From Isurus oxyrinchus (Eukaryota), in contig JANJGN010000151.1 of NCBI GenBank assembly GCA_026770705.1, positions 1-64,000 on the forward strand: a stretch of DNA of 64,000 nt, written 5' to 3'. How positions within the stretch are numbered: position 1 is the stretch's first letter; every line of letters starts with the position of its first letter. The translations under genes were made by a program, and so were the position numbers. The notes under the pieces were generated by a model, which did not search any database, was not told where the DNA came from, and saw nothing but the letters and a program-made list of their open reading frames with translations. Shown here in pieces: positions 1-62,985 of the stretch.

Positions 1-489
1 CATTCAGTAGTAAATCAGGCAGGGCCTAGTGTCATACAAGCAGAGACATGTCAAATGCCGCAACAAATGAGATTGTGTCTCATGTACCTTAAACAGAGAC
101 ACAGGTTATTGTAATATTAAGAGTGATATTGTCTGGTGGAACACTGAGACAGGATGTTGCTGAACACTAACGGAGATTATCTATTACAATAATAACTGAG
201 ATGTGACCTAGGGAAACACAGAAGGATATGCATCCTCTTGCAAATAACTAGAAAAAAGGACGAATGCAACATAAAGTGGGTGTGGTCTCGTGTAATTCGA
301 CTGGGGCAGTGTCTGGTGTAATATAGACGTTAGCATTAAGATGTTGTAGTTAGTAATAACAAAAATTGTGCCTGGTGGAACATAAGTGGAGGCAATCTAA
401 TGCAGAAATAGCTAGGATATCATTTAGTGTGACAGTCCAGTGCACTAATAAATGAGTATTGCTTAATTCTCGAATAATGGTTTATAATC

Positions 490-1015
490 AGGCACTGATC
501 TCAAGCCACTTATCTTCTCACCTATTTTGTGTCATCTGCAAATTTGACGATTGTACATTCACTTCCATCATCTAAGTCATTAATATATGGTATAAATAAT
601 TGAGGCCCCAACACTGATCCCTGTGGCTCCCCGCTAGTTACAGATTGCCATCCTGAAAATGCCCCCTTAACCCATCTCTCTGTCTTCTATTAGTTAGCCA
701 ATCCTTTATCCATGCTGAGATATTACCCCCAAAAACGTGGGGTGTTACCTTATTAAGTAGCCTTGTGTGAAGTACCTTACCGAACGCATTTTGGAAATTG
801 AAATACATTACATCTACTGGTTCTCCTTTTTCAATCTTACTTGTTACCTCACCAAAGAATTAAGATTAATTTGTCAGGTCCGTTTTCTCCTTCTTGAAGC
901 CATGCTGATTCTGCTTCATTAGACTATGTACTTCTAAAGGCTTTGCTATTGCATCATTTATAAAAGACTCCAACATTTTCCCAATGACAGATGTTAAGCT
1001 AACTGGCCTGTTTTT
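490..1015 (-). mobile_element. CR1-type LINE RT fragment (degenerate)
   Basis: Reverse complement matches the RT region of the CR1 copy at 1810-4400 (ttgtgtcatctgcaaattt = KFADDTK; cactgatccctgtgg = PQGSV). Confidence 0.8.
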
Positions 1016-1809
1016 CTACAAACCCCAATTCCTCTGTCAGGGCAGAAATGTAAACCCCATCCCACTCCACTGCTGATCCAACCAACATCAAAACGGGAAC
1101 AGCAGCAACATACGGAACAATGGGGGAGGCGGCCGTGCGCATCGCATTCACACATAAATCTGTCTTCTGCCTCTTAGCTTAAATCTCTGCCCCCTGGTTA
1201 TTGACTCCTCTAATAATGGAAAAATTGCCTTCCAATCCACCCTACCTGTGCCACTCATAATCATATACATATCTCTCAGGTCCCTTTCAGCCTTCATTGC
1301 TCCAAGGAAAACAACCTGTGATGACACTTTTGGCCCTCTATCACTACCTGCCTTTTTGGGGGCCTATAGTACATACCCAATCTCGTGTTTGCTCTTTTGG
1401 CGTTTCTTACTTGTACCTACGGGGTTTCATTTGATGACCCTTCTAAAATATGATCATTCCCCAAGATTCCTTGATCTATGTTGCAACCCCTCCCCCATCC
1501 CGCCCACCGCCCCCCCCTCCCCCGCCCCCCCCCCCCCAAACCAACTCTTCTATCCCTCTCACCACCTCGTTCAAACACACTATAAGCAGGAAGGTTGAGC
1601 TGCCAATCCTGGCCATCCTTTAGCCAAGCCTTGGTCATAGCTATGATATCATGCCCTTCGTGCATATCTGGGTCCACAGCTCCTCACGCTCCTAGCATTA
1701 ATTATATTCCATTTGTGTTCCATTTGAAAATGTTTAAAATGGAACATTTGAATGGAACATTTAAAATAGAACATTTTAACAAGCACACCCAGAAATTGAT
1801 TTCTGCTTA

Positions 1810-4398
1810 TCGATGAGTATAAGGAGCATAAAATGTTAGTGGAGGTTGTATATAGACCCAAAACTGCTGTGGTGAAGCTGGGACTGGAATTAAGCAGGAA
1901 ATTAGAGAAGTATCCAATAAAGAAACATCTGTAATTATGGGTGACTTTCATCTGCATATAGTTTGGCCAAATCAAATACTGTAGAGGAAGAATTCCTGGA
2001 GTGTATACGGGATGGCTTTCTGGACCAATGCGTTGAGAAACGAACTAGAGAACAGGCCATTCTTGACTGGGTATTGTGTAATGAGAAAGCAATAATTGGC
2101 AATCTAGATGTGCCAGGCCCCTTGGGGATGAGCGGCCATAAAATGATAGAATTCTTCATCAATATGGAGAGTGACATAGTTGATTCTGAAACTGGGGCCT
2201 TGAACCTTAATAAAGGAAACTACGATGGTGTGAGGCGTGAGTTGGCTATGATGGATTGGGAAACGTTACTTAAAGGGATGACGGTGGACAGGCATTGGCA
2301 AACATTCAAAGAGCACATGGGTGAACTGAAACAATTGTTATTCCTGCCTGGCGCAAAAGTGAAACAACAAACGTGGCCAAACCATGGTTTACGAGAGAAA
2401 TTAGAGATAGTATTAGATGCAAGGAAGAGGCATACAAATTGGCCAGGAAAAAAAAGACCTGAGCATTGGAAGCAGATTAGAATCCAACAAAGGAGGACCA
2501 AGGTATTGATAAAGAAGGGGAAAATAGAGTACCAGAATAAGCTTGCAGGGAACATAAAACCTGACTGTAAAAGATTCTATAGGTATGTGAAGAGAAAAAG
2601 GTTGGTGAAGACAAATGTAGGTCCCTTACAGTCAGAAACAGGGGAATTTATAATGGGGAGCAAAGAAATGGCTGACCAAGTAAATACATACTTTGGTTCA
2701 GTCTTCACAAAGAGGTCACAAATAACATACCAGAAATGTTGGGAAACTCAGGGTTTAGAGAGAGGGAGGAACTGAAAGAAATTTGTATTAGTAGGGAAAT
2801 GGTGTTGGGGAAATTGATGGGATTGAAGGCCGAAAAATCCCCAGGGCCTGATAATCTACATCCCAGAGCACTTAAGGAAATGACACTAGAAATAATGGAT
2901 GCATTGGTGATCATCTTCCTAGATCCTATAGACTCTGGTACAGTTCCTGCAGATTGGAGGGTTGCTAATGTAACCCCACTATTTAAAAAGAGAGGTACAG
3001 AGAAAACAGGAAATAAAAGGCCAGTCAGCCTGATGTCGCTAGTGGGGAAAATTCTAGAGGCCATTATAAAAGATTTAATAGCTGAGCACTTGGAAAATAT
3101 TGGCAGAATCGGACAGTCAGCATGCATTTACGACAAATTTATTGGAATTTTTCGAGGATGTCACTAGTGGAGTTGATGAGGGGGAGCCAGTGGATGCGTT
3201 TTAGTTGGACTTTCAGAAGGCTGTCGACAAAGTCCGACAGAAGAGATTAGCATGTAAAATTAAAGCGTATGGGATTGGGGAAAGTGTGTTGAGATGGATA
3301 GAAAACTGGTTGGCAGACATGAAACAAAGAGGAGGAATACACGGGACATTTTCCGAATGGCAGGCAGTGACAAGTGGGGTACCTTAGGGATCGGTGCTGC
3401 GTCCCCAGCTATTAACAATAGATATTAATGATTTAAATTAGGGAACTAAATGTAATACCTCTAAATTTGCAGATGACACAAAGCTGGGTGGGAGGGTGAG
3501 CTGTGAGGAGGATGCAGAGCTGCTTCAGTGTGACTTGGACAGGCTGAGTGAGTGGAAAAATGCATGGCAGGTGAAGCATAATGTGGATAAATTTGAGGTT
3601 ATCCACTTTGGATGCAATAACAGGAAGGGAGATTATTATCTGAATGGCTATAAATTCAGAGAGGGGAATGTGCTACGAGAGCTGGGTGTCGTCGTACACC
3701 AATCGCAGAAGGTAAGCATGCAGATGCAGCAGATGCAAAAGAGGGCAAATGGTACGTTGACCTTCATAGCAGAGGATTCCAGTACAGGAGCAGGATGTAT
3801 TGCTGCAATTGTACAGGGCCTTGGTGAGACCACACCTGGAATATTATGGGCAGGTTTGGGCTCCTTATCTGAGGAAGAATGTTCTTGCTATAGAGGGGGT
3901 GCAGCGAACGTTTATCCAACTGATTCCTGGGATGGCAGGACAGACATCTGAGGAGTGATTGATTTGGTTACGATTATATTCGCTTGGGTTCAGAAGAATG
4001 AGAGCAGAATCTCATAGAAGACTATAAAATTCTAACAGGGCCAGACAGTGTAGATGCAGGAAGGATGGTCCCGATGGCGGGGGAGTCCAGAACCAGAGGT
4101 CACAGTCTGTGGATACGGGGTAGACCATTTAGAATTGAGATGAGAAGAAATGTCTTCACCCAGAGAGTGGTGAGCCTATGGAATTCGCTACCACCGAAAG
4201 TATTTGATGCCAAAATAACGCATGCTTTCAAGAAATAGTTAGATATAGCTCTTGGGGCGAAAGGGATCAAAGGGTAAGGGCAGAAAGCGGGAGCAGGCTA
4301 TTGAGTTGGATGATCAGCCACAATCATGATGAATGGCGGAGCTGGCTCGAAGGGCCTATGGCATAGCCCTGCTCCTACTTTCTATGTTTCTATGTTTT
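1810..4398 (+). mobile_element. CR1-type LINE, 5'-truncated, frameshifted ORF2 (end of endonuclease + RT)
   Basis: ORF pieces 1963-2775, 2736-3167, 3205-3387 and 3496-3951 carry KSPGPD, DW..ANVTPLFKK, DFQKA.DKV, SGVP.GSVL and KFADDTK; ends in a (TTCTATGT)n tail at about 4380-4398. Confidence 0.93.
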
Positions 4399-4545: not shown

Positions 4546-5486
4546 AGAGAGAAATAGACAGTGACCGGCAAGAATACACAGAACCCTCACACGTTCTCAA
4601 GTCCAGGTATCAGGGGCACAACAGAAGAGTTCAGGGAGACTGCTTGCGGGACCGCAGGCAGTGCTGATTGTCACAAACTGCGGCAATGATCATAGGCTTT
4701 TGGATAGATGCAGGAAGCAATGGGGGCCGATATGCTGGCGAAGACCACTCAAACTTCTCCTCCCTCCTCTCCCACCCCTGCCCCCCACCTTGATTCCGAA
4801 AGCCTCGACTGACAGGAGGCTCCAAATAAAGCGCAGGGTCCCAGAGCGCAAATAATGTGGCCAATATATCGATGGAGTTTTCACTTTTGGCTGTCAACCA
4901 ACATTGTTATTTGATTGTTTCATTCATTTTTAATTTTCGCTCTGTTTGCCCATTCCAACATTGATACGACTCTCTTTTATTCATCAATCTATAATTCTAA
5001 TTGCTTCTCTGACAAGCTTTTTATCCCAGTCAGTGTCAGCATGTACATTTATATCTGAAGCTATGTCAATCATCATATAAAATCTATCAATCTGTTTTTC
5101 CTGCTCCTTTGTCTCCGGAACGAAGAGTCCTTAAATGGCAAAAACGTTTTCTATCTATTTTATCACANNNNNNNNNNNNNNNNNNNNNNNNNNNNNNNNN
5201 NNNNNNNNNNNNNNNNNNNNNNNNNNNNNNNNNNNNNNNNNNNNNNNNNNNNNNNNNNNNNNNNNNNNNNNNNNNNNNNNNNNNNNNNNNNNNNNNNNNN
5301 NNNNNNNNNNNNNNNNNNNNNNNNNNNNNNNNNNNNNNNNNNNNNNNNNNNNNNNNNNNNNNNNNNNNNNNNNNNNNNNNNNNNNNNNNNNNNNNNNNNN
5401 NNNNNNNNNNNNNNNNNNNNNNNNNNNNNNNNNNNNNNNNNNNNNNNNNNNNNNNNNNNNNNNNNNNNNNNNNNNNNNNNNNNNNN

Positions 5487-5731
5487 CTGTATCACTGTAT
5501 CTGGAATCCCCACTTTGTTCACGTTTTCATAGAGCTCTTTCCGCGCTTTGTATCTCTATGTGTCTGTAATCCCACCATGTTCAGGTTTTTGTACAGCTCT
5601 CTCCGTGCTCTGTATCACTGTGTGTCTGTAATCCCACCATGTTCAGGTTTTTGTACAGTTCTCTCCGTGCTCTGTATCACTATGTGTCTGTAATCCCACC
5701 ATGTTCAGGTTTCTGAACAGCTCTCTCCGTG
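5487..5731 (-). repeat. 62-bp tandem array; each unit is a 23-spacer RSS plus a 23-bp linker
   Basis: Minus-strand unit CACAGTG-ATACAGAGCACGGAGAGAGCTGT-ACAAAAACC-TGAACATGGTGGGATTACAGACA. Nonamers at 5522, 5584, 5646 and 5708 (period 62); array runs into the N-gap 5168-5486. Confidence 0.93.
5584..5622 (-). promoter_or_regulatory. Perfect-consensus 23-RSS
   Basis: Plus strand GGTTTTTGT (5584-5592) + 23 nt + CACTGTG (5616-5622). Confidence 0.95.
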
Positions 5732-5732
5732 A

Positions 5733-5823
5733 TCTAACCCTGAACATTCACAGCTTCAAGTAATGGTGTCACCGACAGCAGATGTTTGTAGAGGCGGGCA
5801 CTAAGACACCAGGGAACTGGAAT
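5733..5823 (-). pseudogene. Truncated leaderless TCR V-delta exon (probable NAR-TCR supporting V)
   Basis: Acceptor tttttttattctccag, then (D)SSSLVS*CPPLQTSAVGDTIT*SCECSGL (FR1 to Cys23, two stops), fused into an RSS spacer. No leader seen upstream; phase-1 start fits the J-like donor at 7222. Confidence 0.72.
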
Positions 5824-6339
5824 CTGGAGAATAAAAAAACGAACATTAATTGTTTGTTTAGCCATGGTTTACCTGGGAGAATTTGTCAATGACATGAAAC
5901 GTTCGTTTTTCTAAACTTGAAGCAAGCCTGTTACAACCGTATTCACCATCATTGAGATGTGATTAAGTGCAGAGATGATAATTTTCTTTTGCATCGAGAA
6001 TTTTTCCAATCTGCACTGCGCGGTCAGAATGGGTGGTGCGAACAGACTCAGTGGGAACTTTCAAATGGCTGATGTACCTATACTACAACAGGAAAAATGG
6101 TAAAAATTGGATTGCACTTTGAAAGTGATAGCACCTCCACGATGGGCCGAATGTCATTCTACCTCTTGGCATGGTTCTATGTTGTATATTACATTTCTGC
6201 TTCTATTTTCCTTGGTGAGTGACACCCCGATGGAACATTTATTATCAGTATGGCAATCAGTTTCCAAAAAATGATTGTATGGGACAATCAGCATCAGCAT
6301 CACTGTGCAAAGCATGATCGAAATGAAAGTGATTGTGAT

Positions 6340-6660
6340 TAATCAGCATTGATTGAAACTTCTCTGTTCCCCATTCTAATGGCCGACCTCTTATGCTGAA
6401 ACTATGGCTCCCAGTTATAGACTTTCCAACCTGAGGAAACTCCCACCTAGAACCTTCCCTCGCAAGCTTCTTAAAGGTATCATGTGTTCTCATGAGATCG
6501 CCCTCATTACTGTAAACTCCAGGGAACACAGGTCCAGTCTACTCAATCCCTTCCCATAGGACAATCCCTTTACTTCAGGAATCAGTCTGATGAAAATTTG
6601 TTCCAAAGCATGTACAACCTTCCCTAAGTTAGATACCTGACTTTACACAGCATTCCATAC
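6340..6660 (-). mobile_element. CR1-type LINE 3' fragment
   Basis: Translates to GDLMRT....GHSFSIRGRP, the CR1 ORF2 C-terminus also seen in the longer copies. Confidence 0.7.
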
Positions 6661-7221
6661 TGGAGTCCTTCTCTCCATAAACATTGCCCACCACCCTTTG
6701 CTCGGATTGTACTTTGAACAGCCCAGAGATCATCCAATCCTTCTCTCCCATTCGATGAATTATTTCTTGCTGGTTCTAAATGAACAGTCTCTCAGTTTAT
6801 AATTTTTTCCTTATGTCCCTGTTCTCCTTTATAAGATTAATGCATCATCCTCACTCTCTCACTGCACTTTGCGTTTTTAATTCACAGTAATCAGGGATAC
6901 AGAGAAATTACAGCAATCCCATCTCTCAAACATCGACATTCAATAAAGAGAAATGTCTGCAGTTCCAAACTTTCACATTTCGATCTGAGGATGGAAAAGG
7001 AGGAAATGATTGGGTATATGAAGACAATTGAAACAAATGGCGGGTAAATGACCCGACTGTCCGATCATACCCTATTCCTAAATCGAAGCCTGCAATGGAA
7101 AAGGTCCCTTAGAAATCGTTTTTTTTAGTTTCGATGTGATTGAAACGATGTTGATCACAAGAAGCTGACTGTGAACAATATCCAGCACAGTCTGCAACAT
7201 GCGGGCTTCAGAGTCACTTAT

Positions 7222-7266
7222 CGGCTGTGACAGTCACCACCATCCTGGATCCATCTACATAATTCG
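7222..7266 (-). pseudogene. J-like segment (probable NAR-TCR J), degenerate
   Basis: Reads NYVDGSRMVVTVTA+G followed by a mutated donor ATAAGT. Upstream are TGGTGTG (7267-7273) and GGTTCTTGA (7290-7298), with a non-canonical 16-nt spacer. Confidence 0.6.
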
Positions 7267-7494
7267 CACACCACTCTCACTCTCCCAGTTCAAGAACCAT
7301 TGACAACTCAACTGCCGGGAAATCATCATCAGGCAGTAGACAATTATACAGCAGGTTTAAATGAATAATCAATATTCAATGTTTCAAAGTCTCTATCTGT
7401 TCAAACTATTCTTTCTGAGGCCCTGAGCTCTGCGTAAATGGTCCTGGGCATGAGATATTCGCTTCATATAAACAGAGAAAAATATCAAAGAAAG

Positions 7495-9604
7495 ATAACT
7501 GAATGGTGGAAATTAAAATTAAAGTGGATCGGCAATGGTTAATATTTAAGGAGCGTATGCATGAATTACAAAAATTATTCATTCCCGTCTGGCGCAAAAA
7601 TAATATGGTTCAACCATGGATTACAAAAGAAATTAGGGATAGTATTAGATCTAACGAGTAGACATAAAAAATCTCCAGAAAAAGCTTCAATCCTGAGGGT
7701 TGGAAGTAGTTTAGAATTCAGCAAAACTGGAAAAAAGACTGATCAAGAAGGGGAAAATGTAGTACGAGAGTAAACTTGCAGGGAACATAAAAATTGATTG
7801 TAAAAGCCTCCATAAATATGCAGAAGAGAAAATGATTAGTAAACAAACACTCACAAACGGGAGAAACGATAATTGGGAACAAAGAAATGGCAAAAAAATT
7901 GAAGAGATATTTTGGTTCTGCCTTCAGAAAAGGCAACACAAATAATTTCCCAGAAATGTTAGGGAACCACGGGCCCAGTGAGAGCGAGGAATTGAAGGAA
8001 ACCAGCATTAGTGAAAAACATTGTGGTGGAGAAATTAATGGGGTTAAAATCTGGAAAATCCCCAGGGCCTGATAATCCACATCCCAGATGTCTAAAGGAG
8101 GTGGCGCTGGAAATATTGGATGCATAGGTGGTCACCTTCCAAAAATCTATAGACTCTGGAACAGTTCCTACATATTGGGGGTGGCAAATGTAACCCCATT
8201 ATTTTAAAAAAAAGGAAGGAGAGCAAAAACAGATAATTACAGAGCAGTTAGCCTAACATCAGTTGTGGGCAAAATGCTAGAGTCTGTTATAAAATAACTG
8301 AACACTTGGAAAGCATCAATGAGATTAGACAAAGTCGGCATCGGTTTATGAAAGGGAAATCATGCTTAACTAATCTACTCGAGTTTTTTAGTAGGATAGA
8401 TAACGGAGAACCACTAGATCTGGTGTATTTGGATTTCAAGAAGATTTTAATAAGGTCCCACCTAAGAGGCTAGTGGACAAAAGCAAAGCACATGAGATTG
8501 GAGGTAATATACTGGCTTGGACTGAGAATTGGTTGACAGACCAGAAACTGACAGTGGGAATAATGGGTCTTTATCCCGGTGGCAGGCCTTGACGAGTGGT
8601 GTACCGCATCGATCAGTGCTTGAGCCCCAGTTATTCACAACATATATAGATAATTTGGATGAGGAAACCAAATGCAATATTTCCAAGTTTGCTGACGACA
8701 CAAAACTGCACGAGGCTGTGAGATGTGAGGAGCATGCAAGAGGGATTCAGGGCAATTTAGACAAGTTTTCTGTGTCGGCAATCACATGGCAAGTGCAGTA
8801 TAACGTGGATAAATATAAAGTTATACGCTTCGGTGTGAAAACAGAAAGTCAGAGCATTATATAAATGGTGATAAATTGGGAAATATGGGTGTACGAAGGA
8901 GTCTGGGTATCGTTGTACACCAGCCAATGAAACTAAACAGACAGGTGCAGCAATTGGGAAGGCAAATGATATGTTGGCCTTCATTTAAAGTGGATTTGAT
9001 TTCAGAAGTAGGGATGTTTTACTGCAGTTGCAAAGGGCCTTGGTGAGAACACACCAGGAGCATTGCGTGCAGATTTGGTCTCTCTACGCAAGAAAAGATA
9101 TATTTGCCGTAGAGGGAGTGGAGCGAATGTTCACGAGGTTGATACTGGGGATGGCAGGACAGTTGTATGAGGAGAGATTGGTTCAACTGGGCCTGCATTC
9201 ACTAGAGTTTAGAAGAATGAGAGGGGTTCTGATTGAAACACATATAATTCTAACAGCGCTAGACAGACTAGATGCAGGAAGGATGTTTCCCTTGGTTGGG
9301 GAGTCTAGAACCAGGGGCCACAGCAGAATACGGGGAAGGCCATTTGCGACCGAAATGAGGAAGATTCCTTCACTCTGAGGGTGGTCAACCTGTAGAATTC
9401 TCGACCAAAGAAGTCTATGGAGTCACTGAGTATATTCAAGAAAAAAATCGACATATTTCTGGATATTAGTGGCATTAAGTGGTATGGACAGAAAGCGGGA
9501 ATATGGTGTTTAGATCCAGGATCAACCATGATAATATTGAACGGCGGAACAAGATCGAAGGGCCGAACGGCCTACTCCAGCTCCTATTTCTATGTTTCTA
9601 TGTT
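7495..9604 (+). mobile_element. CR1-type LINE inserted between the NAR-like V and the J-like segment
   Basis: SGVP, KFADDTK and ESRTRGHS motifs; (TTCTATGT)n tail at about 9587-9604; same family as 1810-4398. Confidence 0.92.
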
Positions 9605-9807
9605 CCACTGTTTCACCGACACCAACCCCGGGGAAGCCTTCACCATCCACACACGCTTCGTAGTTTTAAAACTCAAGTTGTTAACGGTAATAATCCAATC
9701 TCACTACAAACTAGACTGGGGGACAGACGGTATGAGGCTGAACTCTGGGCGTTTAACGGCAGAATTAACTCCGCTTTTTTACTTGTTTTTGTGATAATCT
9801 GCATGAG

Positions 9808-9845
9808 AATGTTTGTATCCCGGGAAGCCGAGGCCAGTCGCTGTG
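9808..9845 (-). promoter_or_regulatory. 22-spacer RSS of the NAR-like V
   Basis: CACAGCG + 22 nt + ACAAACATT. Confidence 0.85.
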
Positions 9846-10311
9846 TAACGTAGTACTGAGCTTTACAGTAATAAGTGGCAGTGCCTTCAACTCTCACATC
9901 CCAAATTTCCAACGAAAATGTCTTTTCTGTTTTATCCATTGACACAAACAATGTCCCCCCGCTGGAGATCCGCTCCCGCTCTGCTCCGGTCTGGGTTTGT
10001 CTGATGAAAAGCACCGTTTGGACAATATCCCAATAACCAGCGTGGAAAACACAGGTAATGGTGAGAGACTGACATTACTTCCTGGTCACCGCTGCCGGGG
10101 TTTGTGTCACTGCTGACTGAAAACTCCTGGAAATTAAACAGAGATAGTTTCATGGACCATCAGAGCCGAATCACAGAACCGGGTTAAACCCCCTGTCTGT
10201 AATTGGGATGGACTCGGGCAGCCTTATATGAAATCCACATAATGTCTGTTTGTGTGATCGGTACTCACGGGGTAAACAGACACACAGGGTGAAAACAAAG
10301 TGGATTCCCAT
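9846..10311 (-). pseudogene. NAR-TCR (IgNAR-like) V segment with leader; pseudogene
   Basis: Leader 10311-10269 MGIHFVFTLCVCLP|GTGAGT. V exon 10126-9846 AVTQTPAAVTRK*CQSLTITCVFHAGYWDIVQTVLFIRQTQTGAERERISSGGTLFVSMDKTEKTFSLEIWDVRVEGTATYYCKAQYYV has the VNAR-type short FR2-CDR2 and an extra FR1 Cys. One stop plus a 1-nt frame mismatch with the leader. Confidence 0.85.
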
Positions 10312-10335
10312 CGTTCTGCTGCCTGGAGCTGGGGG

Positions 10336-10346
10336 TTTATATGACG
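10336..10346 (-). promoter_or_regulatory. TATA box with adjacent CRE half-site upstream of the NAR-like V leader
   Basis: CGTCATATAAA about 25 nt before the ATG; CRE-like motifs are typical of TCR V promoters. Confidence 0.55.
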
Positions 10347-11899
10347 GGGAGTTGGAGACTGCAGCCCTGGACTGCACTGGGAGGCCGGACCTCAGAGCTG
10401 GACTGAAAGATTCTAGGCACGAAAATTAGGCCACGCCTGCCGTTTAAATAAAACGAGAGTTCAAAGGGGCGGAGCTGTTGCACTCAGTCTGTTGCTGCTT
10501 CGGAACTCACGATCCCCAAATTCGGCCTCGTAACCCCACTGGGTGTCGCGTGACACACAGTTTGGGATGCCCTGCTTAATGTGGGGTAATGCTGATTTGC
10601 AGAGGGCAGTATCCGCGAGATCAGTGGTGGGCCGCAAGGATCCACGGTCTCTGGTTGTGTGTTGCGTGAATAACTCTCAGGCTGAATGAGGGAACCCTAT
10701 GACTATCTTTCGCTTCATTGGAGCTGGATGTTAAATCCCCTTCCACATTTCTCTGTTGAACAGGGCGGTGTGAGATGGGCATGATTCTGTCAGTAGGTGC
10801 TGCTGCCCTCCTTCACGCTGTAGTAAGGAGCTGGGAGGTGGTTCCATGTGTATTTACTGTGTGGTCTTACTTCCACTCATTGCAATACTGCCGGGAATTC
10901 ATTAACACCCTGAAGGGGTTGACGGGATCTGGGTTGAGTACCTGATCTGAAGGAGAGAGCCTGAGGCGCCGCTGCTTCCCTCAGTCCAGCCTCTGAGGAT
11001 CAGCTTGCAATATGATACAGCCCATTGACAACATCCAGGCAGATATATACAACATACGCGAAAAACAACCCCCCTCTCTCTTTTAAACAAATGCTTCCCT
11101 TCTCTGTTTTGCATTTAAAATGATGTTTCCATTCAGTGAGGATTGGTTTCCAGTTCTGTAATATTCAGAATTATCATTAACAGTGACAGAGTCTGCGAGT
11201 AAAGACTCCAGGACATGACAGAGTTGATGGGAAAGGGACTGTGCAATATTGCAGGCAGACCTCGAAATGTCAATAACGGAAGAAACGGGAAATTCCCGAT
11301 AGCGTCTGGCCGCACAAAAATGGATGACTGTGCGGCACACAAGCAAGGCCGACGGGAAGTCACACAGAACTAGTCGACTGCATTTCACAGAAACATATTC
11401 GATATTCTTATTGACATTCCAGCACAACAGGGTATCCGCAATGTCCTAATATTCACCCAAATACGTGACTCTCATCATAGTGCCCGTTTTTTACCATTTT
11501 TTGCTAATATCCACCAGGCTTTTTTTCCCCACCACCTATACCCATGCCGGGGTCCCGTAGTCGTGTTCGTGAGCCACCACCAGCACGCAGGCGCCTTGGT
11601 GATGACTGCAATGCTCCCAACTGCCGATCACTGGGCTGAGTATGCGCAGACTGTCACATTCAAAGGTCCCGCTGAAACCCCCAGGGAATTCTGTGCTTGT
11701 TTTCCTCCGCCTCTGCCCGGAAAATACCCCGGACAGACAGGTAAGTTCTCATCCTTAACTGGTGAAAAAAAAAATAAAACCCCTTCATGGTGTTTCTCTT
11801 CCACCAGAGTGTCTCAGTGCATAGAACTTTCTGTCACCTTACCCATAAATTGTCCGCTCAAGCTCCCACATTGGAGGCATATAAAACTCATAGTGCAGC

Positions 11900-17251: not shown

Positions 17252-17787
17252 CGCTGTGCCTCATTGCAGAGTAATACACCGCCCCGTCCTCCACACTCAG
17301 TTCGCTTATGTTGAGGTAACCGTTCTTTTGAGACATGTCAGCAGCCGCCAGATACCGTCCTGAAATTTAATTTTTCTTCAGTGCTAAGACATTGGTAATA
17401 ATCCATCTTGGTGGCTGTGCCGTCTGCTGCCGATACCATTGCCTGTAGTTTAGATTCCGATCTGTATATTCACAATCTAACTGCACCAAACCCCCTTCCG
17501 ACACCGTTAGTGCGACCGGGGACTGAGTTACTGGATGTGCGCATCGTCCGCCTGTGAGGTAGAGGAATGAAATATCAAGCGGTTAAACAGTGTTGATCTC
17601 AATTTGTTTGTAGCTGTTTGGGTTTGCAGAACCTCCTATCTACCTAGTTATCCATACTATGGATATTTCTGATCGTGAATTCTACTAAAAACTATCGCAA
17701 TCTCTGTACACTAATCTACCGATCTGTCTTGATCAACTTAATCCAGTACTTACTGTCGAACAGCGCCGTCAGTATTATCAGCAACAT
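17252..17787 (-). pseudogene. TCR alpha/delta V pseudogene with leader
   Basis: Leader 17787-17754 MLLIILTALFD|GTAAGT. V 17551-17259 HPVTQSPVALTVSEGGLVQLDCEYTDRNLNYRQWYRQQ...KN*ISGRYLAAADMSQKNGYLNISELSVEDGAVYYSAMR (stop, Cys104->Ser). Heptamer CACAGCG; nonamer poor. Confidence 0.92.
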
Positions 17788-20295: not shown

Positions 20296-20802
20296 ATGTT
20301 GTCTGTTCATTCTTCACAGCTGCGATTCTCTTAACTGGTAAATTGCAAAGTTACGCAATTTTCATTTTGCAGGTTATACTGGCACAGTGATCTTCCTTTT
20401 AACTATGTTTCCCTTTATTTATAAAGGGCTCCGTTAACATGATAACCCTGATTGTAACAGTGATAATAAGAAGTTGAAGTTCTGTACTTTGAATTTTCTG
20501 CAGACTCGGTGTTACAGGAGCCGGTTGCAGGAGCACAGTTTGAAGGAGACTCGCTGACCATTAATTTCAGCTATTCGACCACGATTGGTTTCTGCTTCTT
20601 GCAACTGTACCATCAGGAAGGCGAAAAAGCCCCCACAATATTGACCTGTAACCCTTACGCTGGGGTTGTTTTCAACGCAGAGGGCGCGGGGACTCGATTA
20701 TCCGCATCTCTCGACACTTCCAGAAGTGAGGAGAATTTCACGAACCGCGACCTGCGGCTGCCTGACAGCGCGGTGTATTACTGCGGGCTGAGAGACACAG
20801 TG
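20296..20802 (+). pseudogene. TCR alpha/delta V pseudogene
   Basis: Frameshifted leader 20296-20337. V 20504-20795 DSVLQEPVAGAQFEGDSLTINFSYS...LQLYHQ...DSAVYYCGLRD (no Cys23 or Trp41). CACAGTG at 20796; spacer and nonamer disrupted. Confidence 0.92.
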
Positions 20803-21852: not shown

Positions 21853-22061
21853 AGACTCAGTGCACAGCAATAGACCGCGGTGTTAGACAGCCACAACTCC
21901 AAGATCGTCAATCGATACAACTGCTGGACTATATTAGAAAACCGGCTCTGAGCGAAATCCGCCTTAAATACTGAACTGCCACCCATGAGCCTCCGGACTG
22001 CAAATTCGGGCTGTCTGCCTGGGTACTGCCGGTACCAGCATAAGGAATCAGCATCGTCGGT
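21853..22061 (-). pseudogene. 5'-truncated TCR V pseudogene
   Basis: DDADSLCWYRQYPGRQPEFAVRR...ADFAQSRFS...LTILELWLSNTAVYCCALS; FR1 and leader replaced by a Penelope fragment. Confidence 0.88.
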
Positions 22062-28045: not shown

Positions 28046-28527
28046 ATGCAACTCCTCAACATCTGGCTTGTGTGGGGACCATTTCTGACAGGTAATTTTG
28101 GACAACGCACATTTCATCTTTATTTTTCTCATTTCCCACACAGCTTTTAAATGTTCAGATTTTTTTTTCTGTTTCAGCATGTTGTTCACATCTAATTCAT
28201 GGAAATTCTGTAAGAACCGCTGTCCTCAGATGCAAAGGCAAAAGAGGAAGCAGTGACTTTAAGCTGCAGTTAATATCTGACACAAAGCAGCTATTGGCTA
28301 TACTGGTACAGGCAACATCTAGGCGCCCAGCTCCAGTTTATATTGCTGAAATCTACGAGCGATTATGAAGATAAAACAGGTTTTGCCCAAATCCGTTTCT
28401 CAGTCAAGCTCCAGACCTTCGCGAAATTCACTATTTTATCCAATTCAGATCTGCAGTTGACTGATGCTGTCGTGTACTGCTTCTCTGTTAACGATGGAAA
28501 ACAGTCTCACACCTGCGAACAAACTCT
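28046..28527 (+). pseudogene. TCR alpha/delta V pseudogene with leader
   Basis: Leader 28046-28091 MQLLNIWLVWGPFLT|GT. V from 28178: AKEEAVTLSCS*YLTQSSYWLYWYRQHLGAQLQFILLK...FAQIRFSVKL...DLQLTDAVVYCFS. Heptamer lost; nonamer-like ACAAACTCT. Confidence 0.9.
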
Positions 28528-30262: not shown

Positions 30263-30301
30263 TGTTTTTGTACGGCGCCCCTTCTGGTCCCTGTCACTGT
30301 G
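30263..30301 (-). promoter_or_regulatory. 23-RSS
   Basis: CACAGTG + 23 nt + ACAAAAACA. Confidence 0.93.
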
Positions 30302-30817
30302 TCTCTCAGTCCGCAGTAATACACCGGGCTGTCAGACAGCCGCAGGTCACTGATGGTGAAATTCCCCTCACTTTTCGAAGTGTCGAGAGATCCAGAAAAT
30401 CGAGTCCCCACGTCCCTTGCCCTGAAAACATTTGCATAATTCGGGATGTAGATTAAGAATGTGGGGGCTTTACCCCAGTGCTGACAGTATAACTGTAAGG
30501 AATATCTAGTAGCAATGGTGGAATAGCTGTAATGAATGGTCAGCGAGTTTCCTTCAAACTGCATCTCTGCATCTGACCCACGTGAGACCGAGTCTGCACC
30601 ACTTACTCCTGCAGAAATTAAAAATTAAGGAACTTTAAGATTTTATTACTTTATCCCAGTTTATTAGGTTAAGTGAGGGAACACATTCTAAATAGGAATA
30701 AGACTGAATTTTAAAAAAATATTAATGTTACCTGCAAGAGGAAATCCTATAACTAGTAGACTTACCGGGTAAGAGAGCTGCAACTGTGAGAAATGAATAA
30801 AAAATAAAACCCAACAT
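30302..30817 (-). CDS. TCR alpha/delta V segment, open frame but non-canonical (leader 30817-30766; V exon 30608-30302)
   Basis: MLGFIFYSFLTVAALLP|G-VSGADSVSRGSDAEMQFEGNSLTIHYSYS...LQLYCQH...DSPVYYCGLRD. GT/AG intact, no stops; Cys23->Tyr and Trp41->Leu. Confidence 0.85.
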
Positions 30818-31346: not shown

Positions 31347-31808
31347 GCTTCTTGTGCGGTCTGACAGCGTCTCGCTAACACAGAGGCTCAGCGCACAGAG
31401 ATAGACAGTAGAGACAGAAACTAGAGAACTGGGAACGTTCAGCATCAGTTTTTTTATCTGCCTAAAACAGCAGAGAACAGGTCGAGGTAATCTCGAGAAT
31501 TATCTCTCTGTCCCTTCCCGAAGCTCTTCATTAAATACCGAGGAACTGCCCCGGGATACTGGACATATCAGTAGAGATAGGAATTACGACAGAACGTGGA
31601 ACATCTGCAGTTAATATCAGGGTCTGTCCTTCTTCAACCGTTAATTTTGGCGGTTCCTGAGCCACTAAATTTTTGCCACTCGTTCCTGTAACAAAAACAC
31701 AAAAGATTTCAGAATTCTGCGAGTAAGTATAACTAATAGAACAGAAACTCGTCATTTAACAACAGGTAGAACGGCTATTCTTGTCAATAACAAATATGGG
31801 GAGCACAT
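31347..31808 (-). pseudogene. TCR alpha/delta V pseudogene
   Basis: Leader-like MCSPYLLLTRIAVLP (donor lost). V 31685-31386 TSGKNLVAQEPPKLTVEEGQTLIL/C...YLY*YVQYPGAVPRYLMK.../STVYLCALS; CTCTGTG + 23 + ACAAGAAGC. Confidence 0.88.
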
Positions 31809-36310: not shown

Positions 36311-36580
36311 TGTTCAGTGTGAGGATCAGAGCTCCTACCCTGAGCAGGTGTTATCTCGAGAAGGGGAACGGATTGAACTGGATTATCGGCTCTCGGTTGC
36401 CTGGTACAGACAAATACCGACAGAGGCTGCGAAATTTATCGCCTCGATTTACCAGGGGAATATGTCCAAAGGACGCTACACACTGTCCTTTGACCGAGTT
36501 AAGACGTTCAATACCATGTCTATAGTTAACACTGCGGCCCAGGGCGTCAGAGCTTGTTACTGCGCAATGGGGACACAGTG
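36311..36580 (+). pseudogene. TCR V pseudogene (CDR1/Cys23 region deleted)
   Basis: VQCEDQSSYPEQVLSREGERIELDYRLSVAWYRQIPTEAAKFIASIY...CYCAMG + CACAGTG (36574); nonamer poor. Confidence 0.85.
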
Positions 36581-44017: not shown

Positions 44018-45541
44018 CGTCTCTCAGAAACTCAAGGAATTACCGCAGCTGTGCAAAAAAGCATGCCTCCTTTATTCTAAACGAGAGTCTCCAGAGGGAC
44101 TGTTAAGAACAATCTACACCTCAGTCACAGATCAGTGAACAAACAGATCGACTCACGGGTTCTCCCAATCGTTGCCACGTGTCCCATTATATCGTGCTTT
44201 TCTGTGTCAGGTTAGTCCGTGTATTTTTTACGTTTTTAAATGCTTTAACGTTCCCTAAATATTTTAAGAGATATACAGCTGAAATGGGAATGGTCGAAAT
44301 CAATGTTAACGTTTAACAACACCTCTTCTCCCACTCTCACACACAGCCATCACAAAATAGGATTTCAAAGGAATAAGAATTGATTAAATAAGAAATAAGA
44401 ATTGATTAAATAAGAAATAGGAACAGCAGTAGACCATTCGGCCCCTCGAACCTGCTCCGATATTCAATAAGATCATGGCAGATCTTCTTGTGTTTTAATT
44501 TCCACATTCCCATCTAACCCCCATAACCATTGATCCCCTTGCCTGACAAAAATCTATCTGCCTCTGCTTTAAAAATATTCGGCTACCCCGCCTCCATTGC
44601 CTTCCAGTGCAGAGTTCCAAGGTCGTACAACCCTCTGAGAGAAGAAAATTCTCCTCATCTCTGTCCTAAAAGGGCGAACACTAATTTTGAAGTAGTGCCC
44701 GCTAGTTCTGGACTCACCCACAAGAGGAAACGTTTTTTCGATGTCTACCTTGTCAAGGCTGTTCAGGATCTTGAATACTTTAATCAAATAACCCCTCACT
44801 CTTCTAAACTCCGGTGAGAATAAGTCCAGTTTGTCCAACCTTTCCTCATAAGCCAACCCACTCATTCCAGGTATCAATCTAGTAAATCTCCATTCAACCG
44901 CCTCTCATGCATTTACATCCTCCCTAAAATAAGGAGACTAAAACAGCACACAGTATTCGAGGTGCGGCCTCACCAATGCCCTCAATAACTGAAACATAAC
45001 TTCCTTACTTGTAGATAAAAACAAAGAAAACTGCGGATGCTGGAAATCCAAAACAAAAACAGAATTACCTGGAAAAACTCAGCAGGTCTGGCAGCATCGG
45101 CGGAGAAGAAAAGAGTTGACGTTTCGAGTCCTCATGACCCTTCGACAGAACTTGATTTCGAGTCCAAGAAAGAGTTGAAATATAAGCTGGTTTAAGGTGT
45201 GTGTGTGGGGGGGCGGAGAGATAGAGAGAGAGAGAGGTGTTTGTGTAGACAAACAAGCAGTGATAGAAGCAGACCATCAAAAGATGTCAGTGACAATGGT
45301 ACAAAAGAACACATAGGTGTTAAAGTTAAAGTTGGTGATATTATCTAAACGAATGTGCTCATTAAGAATGGATGGTAGGGCACTCAAGGTACAGCTCTAG
45401 TGGGGGTGGGGAGAGCATAAAAGATTTTAAAATATTTAAAAATAATGGAAATAGGTGGGAAAAGAAAAATCTATATAATTTATAGGGGAAAAAAAGGGGA
45501 AAGAGGGGAAACAGAAAGGGGGTGGGGATGGGGGAGGGAGC

Positions 45542-47304
45542 TCACGACCTAAAGTTGTTGAATTCAATATTCAGACCGGAAGGCTGTAAGGTGCCTAGTC
45601 GGAAGATGAGGTGTTGTTCCTGCAGTTTGCGTTGGGCTTCACTGGAACAATGCAGTAAGCCACGGAAAGACATGTGGGCAAGAGAGCAGGATGGAGTGTT
45701 AAAATGGCAAGCGACAGGGAGGTTTGGGTCATTCTTGCGGACAGACTGCAGGAGTTCTGCAAAGAGGTCGCCCAGTTTACGTTTGGTCTCTCCAATGTAG
45801 AGGAGACCACACTGGGAGCAACGAACGCAGTAGACTAAGTTGAGAGAAATGCAAGTGAAATGCTGCTTCACTTGAAAGGAGTGTTTGGGCCCTTGGACGG
45901 TGAGGAGAGAGGAAGTGAAGGGGCAGGTGTTACATCTTTTGTGTGGGCTTGGGGTGGTGCCATAGGAGGGGGTTGAGGAGTAGGGGGTGATGGAGGAGTG
46001 GACCAGGGTGTCCCGGAGGGAGCGATGCCGACGGAATGCCGATAAGGGGGGTGAAGGGAAGATGTGTTTGGTGGTGGCATCATGCTGGAGTTGGCGGAAA
46101 TGGTGGAGGATGATCCTTTGAATGCGGAGGCTGGTGGGGTGATAAGTGAGGACAAGGGGGACCCTATCATGTTTCTGGGAGGGAGGAGAAGGCATGAGGG
46201 CAAATGCGCGGGAGATGGGCCGGACACGGTTGAGGGCCCTGTCAACGACCGTGGGTGGAAAACCTCCCTTAAGGAAGAAGGAGGACATGTCAGAGGAACC
46301 GTTTTTGAAGGTAGCATCATCGGAACAGATGCGACGAAGGCGAAGGGACTGGGAGAATGGGATGGAGTCCTTACAGGAAGCAGGGTGTGAGGAGCTGTAG
46401 TCGAGGTTGCTGTGGGATTCGGTGGGTTTGTAATGGATATTGGTGGACAGTCTATCACCAGAAATTGAGACAGAGAGGTCAAGGAAGGGAAGGGAAGTGT
46501 CAGAGATGGACCACGTGAAAATGATGGAGGGGTGGAGATTGGAAGCAAAATTAATAAATTTTTCCAAGTCCCGACGAGAGCATGAAGCGGCACCGAAGTA
46601 ATCATCGATGTACCGGAGAAAAAGTTGTGGAAGGGGGCCGGAGTAGGACTGCAACAAGGAATGTTCCACATACCCCATAAAGAGACAGGCATAGCTGGGG
46701 CCCATGCGGGTACCCATAGCCACACCTTTTATTTGGAGAAAGTGAGAGGAGTTGAAGGAGAAAATGTTCAACGTGAGAACAAGTTCAGCCAGACGGAGGA
46801 GAGTAGTGGTGGATGGGGATTTTTCGGGCCTCTGTTCGAGGAAGAAGCTAAGGGCCCTCAGACCATCCTGGTGGGGGATGGAGGTGTAGAGGGATTGGAT
46901 GTCCATGGTGAAGAGGAAGCGGTTGGAGCCAGGGAACTGGAAATTGTTGATGTGACGTAAGGTGTCAGAGGAATCACGGATGTAGGTGGGAAGGGACTGG
47001 ACAAGGGGAGAGAGAAGGGAGTCAAGATAACGAGAAATGAGTTCTGTGGGGCAGGAGCAAGCTGAGACGATCGGTCTACCGGGGCAGTTCTGTTTGTGGA
47101 TTTTGGGTAGGAGATAGAAGCGGGCCGTCTGAGGTTGGGCGGCTATCAGGTTGGAAGCTGTGGGAGGGAGATCCCCAGAGGAGATGAGGTCACTGACAGT
47201 CCTGGAAACAATGGCTTGATGTTCAGTGGTGGGGTCATGGTCCAGGGAGAGGTAGGAGGAAGTGTCTGCGAGTTGACGCTCAGCCTCCGCGAGGTAGAGG
47301 TCAG
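45542..47304 (-). CDS. Penelope RT + GIY-YIG endonuclease, 5'-truncated, frame open
   Basis: LPKIHK, GRPIVS, MDIQSLYT, GVAMGT, RYIDD, FLD, VYC..C..C..YIGET. Confidence 0.88.
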
Positions 47305-49008
47305 TGGACCATGACCCCACCACTGAACATCAAGCCATTGTTTCCAGGACTGTCACTGACCTCATCTCCTCTGGGGATCTCCCTCCCACAGCTTCCAACC
47401 TGATTGTCGCCCAACCTCGGACGGCCCGCTTCAATCTCCAACCCAAAATCCACAAACAGATCTGCCCCGGTAGACCGATCATCTCAGCTTGCTCCTGCCC
47501 CACAGAACTCATTTCTCTTTATCTTGACTCCCTTCTCTCTCCCCTTGTCCAGTCCCTTCCCACCTACATCCGTGATTCCTCTGACACCTTACGTCACATC
47601 AACAATTTCCAGTTCCCTGGCTCCAACCGCTTCCTCTTCACCATGGACGTCCAATCCCTCTACACCTCCATCCCCCACCAGGATGGTCTGAGGGCCCTTA
47701 GCTTCTTCCTCGAACAGAGGCCCGAACAATCCCCATCCACCACTACTCTCCTCCATCTGGCTGAACTTGTTCTCACGTTGAACAATTTCTCCTTCAACTC
47801 CTCTCACTTTCTCCAAATAAAAGGTGTGGCTATGGGTACCCGCATGGGCCCCAGCTATGCCTGTCTCTTTATGGGGTATGTGGAACATTCCTTGTTGCAG
47901 TCCTACTCCGGCCCCCTTCCACAACTTTTTCTCCGATACATCAATGATTACTTTGGTGCCGCTTCATGCTCTCGTCGGGACTTGGAAAAATTTATTAATT
48001 TTGCTTCCAATCTCCACCCCTCCATCATTTTCACGTGGTCCATCTCTGACACTTCCCTTCCCTTCCTTGACCTCTCTGTCTCAATCTCTGGTGGTAGACT
48101 GTCCACCAATATCCATTACAAACCCACCGACTCCCACAGCTACCTCGACTACAGCTCCTCACACCCCGCTTCCTGTAAGGACTCCATCCCATTCTCCCAG
48201 TTCCTTCGCCTTCGTCGCATCTGTTCTGATGATGCTACCTTCAAAAACGGTTCCTCTGACATGTCCTCCTTCTTCCTTAACCGAGGTTTTCCACCCACGG
48301 TCGTTGACAGGGCCCTCAACCGTGTCCGGCCCATCTCCCGCGCATCTGCCCTCATGCATTCTCCTCCCTCCCAGAAACATGATAGGGTCCCCCTTGTCCT
48401 CACTTATCAACCCACCAGCCTCTGCATTCAAAGGATCATCCTCCGCCATTTCCGCCAACTCCAGCATGATGCCACCACCAAACAAAATCTTCCCTTCACC
48501 CCCCTTATCGGCATTCCATAGGGATCGCTCCCTCTGGGACACCCTGGTCCACTCCTCCATCACCCCCTACTCCTCAACCCCCTCCTATGGCACCACCCCA
48601 TGCCCACGCAAAAGATGTAACACCTGCCCCTTCACTTCCTCTCTCCTCACCGTCCAAGGGCCCAAATACTCCTTTCAAGTGAAGCAGCATTTCACCTGCA
48701 TTTCCCCCAACTTAGTCTACTGCATTCGTTGCTCCCAATGTGTTCTCCTCTACATTGGAGAGACCAAACGTAAACTGGGCGACCGCTTTGCAGAACACCT
48801 GCGGTCTGTCCGCAAGAATGACCCAAACCTCCCTGTCGCTTGCCATTTTAACACTCCACCCTGCTCTCTTGCCCACATGTCTGTCCTTGGCTTACTGCAT
48901 TGTTCCAGTGAAGCCCAACGCAAACTGGAGGAACAACACCTCATCTTCCGACTAGGCACCTTACAGCCTTCCGGTCTGAATATTGAATTCAACAACTTTA
49001 GGTCGTGA
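47305..49008 (+). pseudogene. Penelope RT + GIY-YIG, 5'-truncated, frameshift near 48485, catalytic YIDD->YIND
   Basis: ORFs 47304-48521 and 47824-49008 mirror the left arm. Confidence 0.9.
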
Positions 49009-49395
49009 GCTCCCTCCCCCATCCCCACCCCCTTTCTGTTTCCCCTTTTTCCCTTTTTTTCCCTATAAATTATATAGATTTTTCTTTTCCCACCTATTTC
49101 CATTATTTTTAAATATTTTAAAATCTTTTATGCTCCCCCCACCCCCACTAGAGCTGTACCTTGAGTGCCCTACCATCCATTCTTAATGAGCACATTCGTT
49201 TAGATAATATCACCAACTTTAACTTTAACACCTATGTGTTCTTTTGTACCATTGTCGCTAACATCTTTTGATGGTCTGCTTCTATCACTGCTTGTTTGTC
49301 TACACAACCACCTCTCTCTCTCTCTATCTCTCCGCCCCCCCACACACACACCTTAAACCAGCTTATATTTCAACTCTTTCTTGGACTCGAAATCA

Positions 49396-49434
49396 AGTTC
49401 TGTCGAAGGGTCATGAGGACTCGAAACGTCAACT
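49396..49434 (+). ncRNA. Minimal hammerhead-ribozyme-like motif in the Penelope 3' UTR (variant core)
   Basis: AGTT-CTGTCGA-A-GGGTC-ATGAG-GACTC-GAAA-CG-TC-AACT gives stem I, core, stem II, GAAA and a GUC site. Mirror copy at 45114-45152. Confidence 0.6.
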
Positions 49435-50479
49435 CTTTTCTTCTCCGCCGATGCTGCCAGACCTGCTGAGTTTTTCCAGGTAATTGTGTTTTTGTTTTCC
49501 TTACTTGTATGTTGACTCCCTCTCGTAATAAAGAATATCATTCCATTAGCCTTCTTTAGTACTTGCTCTACCTGCAAATTAACTTTTTGTGACTCGTGTA
49601 CTCGAACACCTAGATCCCTCCGCCCATCAGGATTATGCAGTCATTCTCCATTTAAGTAACACTCTGTTCTTTTGTTCTCCCTGCCAAAGTAAACAACTTC
49701 ACGTTTTCTCACATTAAATTCAATTTGCCAGGTCTTTTCCCACTCACTCAATCTATCTATATCCATCTGCAACCTCCTCATGTCCTCATCGCAACATACT
49801 TTCCTACCTATCTTTGTGTCACCTGCAAATTTAGCTAGCATGTCTTCAAGCACATCGTCTAAGTCATTGATGTAAATCGTATAAAAATAAGGCCCCATAC
49901 AGAACCTTGTGGGACTCTTCTCGTCACATCCTGGCAATCCGAAAAAGAGCCATTTATGCACACTCTCTGCTGTCCGTCAGCCAGCCTGATAACTGAAGCT
50001 AACACGATCATATCCCCCTTTGACTTAACAAGCATTGGAGGTAAACCGTTGTTTTGGGTCACATAGAGCAAGAGAATAGCATTCCGACTAACATAGTGGA
50101 TTGTTTTGTTTTACGTTTTACTGAAAATAGCTGCCATTCTGAGTTTTCCGTTTTATTTTCCCAGAGAACACTGGGTCGTCAAACATCATGATTTGCAGGA
50201 TATGTGTAAACAAAACATGGAGGAGAAAGTCGAGTGTAAGTTAATGAACCTCGTTGAACTTAGGGGCAAACTGCTCTGTGCTCACTCTTCCGTTACTCGC
50301 TCAGGGAAAAATAGTTGTTTCGGGTCTCTGCTCAAATGCTTTTTGCGGATTGTTGCAAATCCTATCAGCTGCTTTGCAGGCGCAGCTCGCCATTGTCCAC
50401 GCATGAGACCCAGTCAAATAACTAACATCATCCAAGTGATTCTAGAAATTGAGACAGTTTCAGGAATTCACGCACAGAC

Positions 50480-62471: not shown

Positions 62472-62985
62472 ATGTGAGCCCTGTTTTGATGTGACTTATC
62501 ATTCTTCCCCTTTTAATCTGTAAGTATTAAAATGATTTCCCTTTCTCTGGTGTAAATTATCCAAACGCCCTTTATAATAGTTATACCGTAATTGTGGACT
62601 GGAATGCTCGTAATCACTAAGTGTGTTAACAACTGTTTTCTATATTATTTTACAGGTAAAACCCGAGGGAGTTCGGTAGTGCAGAGATAACATGAGTTGA
62701 AGTTACATGAGGAAGATAATCCGCAATTGAACTGTGAGTACAACTCCAGTTCTGATGGATCCATTTTGCTGCACCCGAACCAGGCATCCCTTTTTCTGTT
62801 GTACTGTGATAAAACCAGGCGCAGGGATGCCGAGTTTGCGAACGGAAAATTCGATGCTCGTCATTTCCGTCATTATCAAGCTTTGCGTTTGCCAATTTCT
62901 ATAGCGGAGCCTAAAGACAGCGCCATCTATTTCTGCGGATTGAGGATCACAGTATGACAAAGCCGCTCTACTCCGTACAAAAACA
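62472..62985 (+). pseudogene. TCR alpha/delta V pseudogene with 22-spacer RSS
   Basis: Decayed leader 62472-62519. V from 62656: SVVQR*HELKLHEEDNPQLNCEYN (WYRQ deleted)...FANGKF...DSAIYFCGLR; CACAGTA (62948) + 22 + ACAAAAACA. Confidence 0.9.

Follow-up and report, generated by a model that had tools for sequence, protein, structure and literature searches.

V segments are taught as carrying one RSS. In the stretch of Isurus oxyrinchus DNA analysed here (64,000 nucleotides, referred to as the window), the remnant of a supporting V-delta gene is followed by a whole row of such recombination signals, placed head to tail. This raises the questions of how the row arose, whether it is peculiar to this one gene remnant, and whether it serves a purpose. 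The first-pass annotation, which was made from the sequence alone, had offered three explanations for it, i.e. (a) slippage amplification of the RSS of a V segment, (b) reserve RSSs for alternative or secondary rearrangement, or a RAG sink/deletion element, and (c) a footprint of RAG-mediated events.

Anatomy of the array

As assessed by Tandem Repeats Finder (TRF), positions 5487-5735 form a single array, with a period of 62, 4.0 copies and 87% matches (score 356). Its units lie on the minus strand in one shared orientation and follow a common plan, in which heptamer and nonamer are 23 nt apart and a linker of 22-23 nt comes after the nonamer. From the V side outward, the array and the gap that borders it are made up as follows.

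5735-5685, minus strand: U0, partial; final 19 nt of the spacer, then nonamer TCAGAAACC (5716-5708), then linker (5707-5685)
5684-5623, minus strand: U1; heptamer CATAGTG (5684-5678), 23 nt, nonamer ACAAAAACC (5654-5646) and linker
5622-5561, minus strand: U2; heptamer CACAGTG (5622-5616), 23 nt, nonamer ACAAAAACC (5592-5584) and a 23-nt linker (5583-5561)
5560-5500, minus strand: U3, 61 nt; heptamer CATAGAG (5560-5554), 23-nt spacer, nonamer ATGAAAACG (5530-5522) and a 22-nt linker
5499-5487, minus strand: U4, partial; heptamer TACAGTG (5499-5493) and 6 nt of spacer, then a run of N
5168-5486, no strand: assembly gap of 319 N, which conceals the distal end of the array

The perfect consensus 23-RSS is that of U2 (5622-5584), and the signal consisting of CATAGTG and a perfect nonamer (5646-5684) is that of U1. 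Both had been recognized correctly by the first-pass annotation, as had the run of the array into the 319-nt gap. Its account of a 62-bp array with partial end units also stands as regards coordinates, V orientation and the TRF result, but it has to be amended in one respect. U0, which starts at spacer nt 5 (position 5735, where the TRF array ends) and has no heptamer, is a spacer-truncated unit rather than a degenerate full one.

The units differ markedly in how well they match U2. U1 is 96.8% identical to it, U3 is 72% identical, and U4, the nonamer of which is hidden by the gap, is identical at 12 of 13 nt. Exact nonamers at 23-nt spacing are present in U1 and U2, and those of U0 and U3 differ. 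The CAC triplet of the heptamer, which is strictly conserved according to PMC12711392, is kept in U2 and lost in U1 (CAT), U3 (CAT..A.) and U4 (TAC). The earlier statement that the RSS has been preserved better than its V is accurate for one unit in five.

A perfect RSS is a 16-base motif expected by chance ~3e-5 times in 128 kb, and an RSS scan at ≤3 mismatches returned five matches vs 0.84 expected. There is no second copy of the full 62-mer elsewhere in the window, nor, apart from the RSSs of unrelated V segments, does the window contain an inverted RSS partner at ≤3 mismatches. No surviving heptamer abuts a coding segment; the linker of the preceding unit stands before each. None of the three V-sense frames of the unit is free of stops, and 62 cannot be divided by 3. 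When proteins were searched with the plus-strand ORF that runs through the array, there was no match, nor was there one in exact-pattern scans of JGI metagenome contigs using a two-RSS pattern and a unit-specific 27-mer. No joints within the array were seen in germline whole-genome reads, which are of low depth.

The cassette around the array

The surroundings of the array were mapped exon by exon with tblastn, using as query a basking-shark protein of 235 aa with two V domains (XP_078393577.1, here P0005), which we had found among the homologues of the NAR-type V exon upstream of the array. This identified the components of an NAR-TCR cassette, listed below in their order on the minus strand, together with a repeat recognized by read depth.

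10311-10267, minus strand: leader exon (14 of 15 identities with the P0005 leader)
10131-9850, minus strand: NAR-TCR V exon (V-set, E 6e-5; tblastn with P0005)
7455-9586, no strand: very high-copy interspersed repeat, inserted between NAR V and J (read depth)
7273-7222, minus strand: NAR-TCR J segment (tblastn, 12 of 18 identities with the J of P0005)
5840-5824, minus strand: acceptor site for splicing to the stub, with polypyrimidine tract and AG (5825-5824)
5823-5736, minus strand: supporting V-delta stub, leaderless, FR1 only, 29 codons (tblastn with P0005)

The upstream V is of the NAR type, since a leader and the a-b loop Cys are present and there is no WYRK Trp, and it shares 65 of 91 residues with P0005 and 65 of 90 with P0016. 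It has an in-frame TAA at 10077-10075, where most paralogous reads have GAA. At the J segment, the splice donor reads ATAAGT (7221-7216) and not GTAAGT, i.e. GT has become AT. The repeat that separates these two components reaches a read depth of 200-4300 vs 10-70 in its flanks, in all four runs mapped, which come from this species and two others. Ahead of the stub, the G at 5824 lies at the position where the J exon would give base 1 of a split Asp codon; in P0005, the J/V boundary falls between ...TVTA and DSSS.

The stub itself had rightly been called V-delta by the first-pass annotation. With the polypyrimidine-AG acceptor ahead of it, it is identical at 20-22 of 29 positions to FR1 of the second V domain in 12 shark NAR-TCR proteins. 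It contains two in-frame stops and breaks off where CDR1 begins. The rest of the V domain, including the extra cysteine of CDR1, is missing, as the V ends at codon 29, before that Cys, and is fused there directly to the spacer of U0 (deletion junction 5736/5735). Because codon 29 runs straight into spacer nt 5 of U0, we conclude that a deletion took all of the V from codon 30 onward, the V-proximal RSS with its heptamer, and an uncounted number of units. At least five defects leave the cassette dead, and its V-delta is a truncated pseudogene.

A longer stretch, 6082-5745, was also considered as a candidate V pseudogene of full length, with five stops in a single frame. This candidate was rejected, and only 5823-5736 is counted as V, because the P0005 alignment leaves the rest of the stretch as intron. 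Pieces of 6082-5745 had no match in Pfam, in PDB sequences or in a HMMER search of 1.84 billion proteins, and the similarity of the stretch to other V segments was not above shuffle.

The window contains further V segments of TCR alpha/delta type, at 17262-17531(-), 20497-20790(+), 21855-22037(-), 28247-28480(+), 30304-30609(-), 31386-31615(-), 36393-36569(+) and 62670-62942(+). They occur in both orientations, and many have stops or are without the canonical Cys or Trp. At the three that were checked, there is a single RSS and no repeat (30263-30301, after 20790, and after 62942). Within 45001-49509, the short repeats that TRF reported at 45216-45511 and 49039-49332 mirror each other, as would fit an inverted duplication.

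The repeat in other individuals and species

Four runs were mapped onto positions 5487-10400 at 80% likeness. In X12, which consists of ~1.9 Gb of raw 151-nt reads from another individual of the same species, the summed depth was ~44 in the array bin vs ~10 in the stub and intron bins. Shark genomes generally have several Gb, hence the coverage of X12 should be well below one-fold. If the genome is indeed of that size, the whole cassette family is multi-copy, and the RSS units are several-fold more abundant than the V flank. In run X5, which is putative RNA, depth was 2.3 on the array and there was none on the stub.

Contigs of other species differ from the window by ~8-11%. A 156-nt contig of organism B spans 5574-5731, which corresponds to 2.5 tandem units, with 12 differences and two gaps. 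In organism C, a contig of 1177 nt matches 5683-6855 collinearly, through the junction of stub and array, with ~88-89% identity and no large indel. Because this contig is collinear across the junction, the truncated cassette may predate the split from organism C, or it may have been duplicated after the deletion. The first-pass annotation had allowed for an assembly artefact, which is excluded by the raw reads of another individual and the contig of organism B, and for an array unique to this pseudogene, which is excluded by the X12 reads, the contigs of other species and the tails of intact genes.

These tails came from a search of a protein database using the second domain of P0005 as query, in which the evidence consists of the amino-acid tails of gene models. 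The suggestion that the repeat might be sought behind intact supporting V-delta genes of other sharks proved fruitful, since it was found in such tails. Two-domain models were present in Cetorhinus, Carcharodon, Heterodontus, Mustelus, two Scyliorhinus species and Hemiscyllium, as well as in Pristiophorus, Rhincodon, Stegostoma, Chiloscyllium, Pristis and Heptranchias. Most of them terminate in ...TAQ followed by a stop, which is the end of the V plus the heptamer read as gCACAGTGa. Tails in which the frame is open are RSS units translated one after another, the frame shifting each time. The tails were scored against the three frame translations of U2, with 31 as the 99.5% shuffle threshold.

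P0046, ENA contig: five consecutive units, scores 50-93
P0055, whale shark (Rhincodon): two units, scores 79 and 61
P0040, whale shark (Rhincodon): two units, scores 67 and 52
P0047, zebra shark (Stegostoma): two units, scores 47 and 47
P0031 and P0044, epaulette shark (Hemiscyllium): two to three units, scores 31-66
P0037, sawshark (Pristiophorus): one unit and the beginning of a second

The units of P0046 start ~20-21 residues apart, their frame order yields a 61-nt period, and all five are consensus-compatible at the decodable heptamer and nonamer positions. Second units are degenerate in Rhincodon, Stegostoma and Hemiscyllium. Over all tails, the unit measures ~59-63 nt and is present in 2 to 5+ copies, with a spacer of 23 nt wherever it can be decoded. 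As judged from these translated sequences, the repeat trails intact supporting V-delta genes in several orders. In four rearranged-looking proteins (P0029, P0036, P0051 and P0061), the join is at the first heptamer, directly at the end of the V.

Some features of the gene models deserve mention in their own right. In the range P0006-P0060, two-domain NAR-TCR models from NCBI end in ...TAQ, the heptamer supplying the TGA stop. Several NAR-TCR models are misleadingly named (e.g. 'Down syndrome cell adhesion molecule-like', 'lachesin-like' or 'immunoglobulin gamma-1 heavy chain-like'). P0010 and P0012 (Carcharodon, Heterodontus) have at least two NAR-type VDJ-like domains in a row ahead of the supporting V-delta.

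To compare motifs with the rest of the unit, eight tails were aligned codon-wise to a U2 tandem, with frameshifts allowed, and the changes at codon positions 1 and 2 were obtained by parsimony. In the first (V-proximal) unit, mismatches amounted to 4.3% in heptamer and nonamer vs 16.9% in spacer and linker (Fisher p=0.003), whereas in later units they amounted to 11.4% vs 12.6% (Fisher p=1), in a test that is small and of low power (~80 motif positions per class), sees only arrays with open frames, works via amino acids, and is polarised by parsimony toward the unit of the Isurus oxyrinchus genome, which was the source of the consensus. When the window array was compared with U2, leaving out the non-homologous part of U0, mismatches numbered 9 of 48 in the motifs vs 14 of 139 elsewhere (p=0.13). 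On these figures, only the first RSS looks constrained, and later units appear to drift. The all-consensus units of P0046 could be due to young age or to selection.

Origin of the array and its place among known systems

We consider it probable that the array represents, in a local and decayed form, an old repeat produced by slippage or unequal crossover, which is tolerated rather than purpose-built and is here a relic; that slippage produced it, that it is old and that it lacks a function are what we infer. The repeat unit would be one 23-RSS plus ~22-23 nt of its 3' flank, located behind the leaderless supporting V-delta of elasmobranch NAR-TCR cassettes. In an ancestor, a segment of 61-63 bp would have been duplicated via replication slippage or unequal exchange, after which the array would have been copied along with each cassette duplication, and its copy number would still be changing by the same processes. 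Slippage or unequal exchange is suggested because the units are head to tail, the linker is constant, length and copy number are variable, and neighbours are more alike. The 96.8% identity of U1 and U2 vs 72% for U3 and U2, seen beside the ~8-11% difference from other species, fits ongoing exchange inside the array. Of the three explanations offered at the outset, slippage amplification is therefore the likeliest, but it would not have taken place at this pseudogene, as the repeat is found behind intact genes elsewhere.

Selection would keep the V-proximal RSS alone, as the maker of productive V-D/J joins, and leave the distal units to drift. A join at a distal heptamer would be non-productive, because every V-sense frame of the unit has a stop and units would be left behind the V. 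The units that remain in the window after the deletion would be relics, because the cassette is dead and the deletion removed the V-proximal RSS. U2, which has the consensus sequence, would in principle be cleavable by RAG if accessible, the product being a non-coding deletion. In mouse Tcrd, pseudogene V segments are used once they are accessible or inside a RAG scanning domain (PMC4995090). It is nevertheless likely that the window copy has no function of its own.

Could the row be a selected device of the supporting V-delta family, of which the window copy is a dead, decaying neutral example? V-delta 23-RSSs are able to pair with several downstream 12-RSSs, which makes a rescue join conceivable, and such a device could act through better RAG capture of the V by scanning or through a second try after a non-productive join. 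The recurrence of the repeat behind supporting V-delta in several species and many cassettes agrees with this, as do the five units with consensus-compatible motifs in P0046 and, in mouse Tcrd, the tracking of RAG along loop domains and the heavy use of a pseudogene V after it has become accessible (PMC4995090). We nonetheless think such a device unlikely. Heptamers and nonamers show no surplus conservation in later units (in the low-power test described above), and second units are degenerate in Rhincodon, Stegostoma and Hemiscyllium. Moreover, each unit retained adds stops and, at 62 bp, a frame shift, the period (59-63 bp) and the copy number (2 to 5+) vary as in a drifting minisatellite, and the window copy has decayed without bias toward the motifs. 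It is equally improbable that supporting V-delta genes of NAR-TCR cassettes maintain such arrays as a property of their own, by which RAG would be drawn toward these doubly rearranging cassettes or a failed first join given another chance, with the five-unit array of the P0046 type as the working form. A reserve, booster or sink function finds no support either, considering that the cassette is dead, that its motifs are no better kept than the rest, and that only the first unit looks constrained elsewhere.

The remaining readings fare worse. Birth of the array at the window pseudogene itself, through recent slippage, would account for the 96.8% identity of U1 and U2, which implies at least one recent duplication or exchange inside the array. 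It is very unlikely in view of a unit that is multi-copy in an independent individual, present in contigs of two other species and translated behind intact genes in other sharks, and the 72% likeness of U3 to U2 points to an old array overall. For the germline-joined Ig genes of sharks, RAG activity in the germ line is accepted, and either the array or the joint between it and the V stub might be a footprint of such activity, as the first-pass annotation had also envisaged. The heptamer is near-palindromic, so a cut on its far side and trimming of ~4 nt could put a break near spacer nt 5. RAG signal joints, however, are heptamer-to-heptamer, i.e. head to head, whereas in the array one unit follows the other head to tail, always across the same linker; in addition, the junction 5736/5735 lies within a spacer and is without a heptamer, and there is no inverted RSS partner nearby, which together make a RAG footprint highly improbable. 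We give practically no credence to an assembly artefact or a chance resemblance to RSSs. The array does adjoin a gap of 319 N, but it is supported by raw 151-nt reads of another individual (~44x summed depth) and by the organism B contig, which crosses 2.5 units, and a perfect 16-base motif would be expected only ~3e-5 times.

An old repeat that has been tolerated behind this V family, which is the reading we prefer, combines known and new elements. The canonical 23-RSS and the doubly rearranging NAR-TcR cassette are known; the row of RSSs behind one V family appears to be new, in that a full-text literature search found no description of it, although an earlier one is possible. With a head-to-tail row of RSSs across shark orders, nature has set up an experiment on the choice that RAG makes between identical, adjacent signals in the same orientation. 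It also tests how long non-selected RSSs survive beside a selected one, for which the window copy is useful as a neutral baseline. For annotation, it means that gene models of this family stop at the heptamer TGA or run into the repeat, and that RSS scanners report several signals per V.

How does the array compare with known systems? The 23-RSS of a canonical TCR alpha/delta V (e.g. that at 30304-30609(-), whose RSS occupies 30263-30301) has the same CACAGTG, 23-nt spacer and A-rich nonamer, pointing away from the V. Whereas the canonical V segments of the window have one RSS each, in the array the signal and a 23-nt flank are repeated head to tail. Unlike with a canonical RSS, only the first unit of a tandem array abuts coding sequence, and in the window copy that unit is deleted.

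The kappa deleting element/RS, deltaRec-psiJalpha and cryptic V-replacement RSSs are cut by RAG without a flanking functional coding segment. U2 resembles these isolated-RSS deleting elements in that it has the sequence needed for RAG cutting. Such elements, however, occur singly, are conserved and have a regulated use, whereas the array shows no sign of motif conservation or use. The ends of Transib/ProtoRAG transposons are inverted RSS-like terminal repeats, unlike the array, in which all units have one orientation and there is no inverted partner.

The doubly rearranging NAR-TcR cassette of cartilaginous fishes was reportedly described by Criscitiello et al. in 2006, and the window resembles it in having a leader, an NAR V, a J and a leaderless V-delta acceptor. 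Its features, as given in PMC1845163, are a leader-bearing V of the NAR type, which has a Cys in the a-b loop but lacks the Trp of WYRK, and a J that splices to a leaderless V-delta. The window copy differs in being a pseudogene whose V-delta is cut to FR1, and in the accessible accounts of the cassette there is no mention of repeated RSSs. Finally, the array is like a minisatellite evolving through slippage or unequal crossing-over in its head-to-tail units of 59-63 bp, in a copy number that varies by locus and species, and in the greater likeness of neighbouring units. It differs from one in that the array unit holds a complete RAG recognition signal, at a fixed place beside one gene family.
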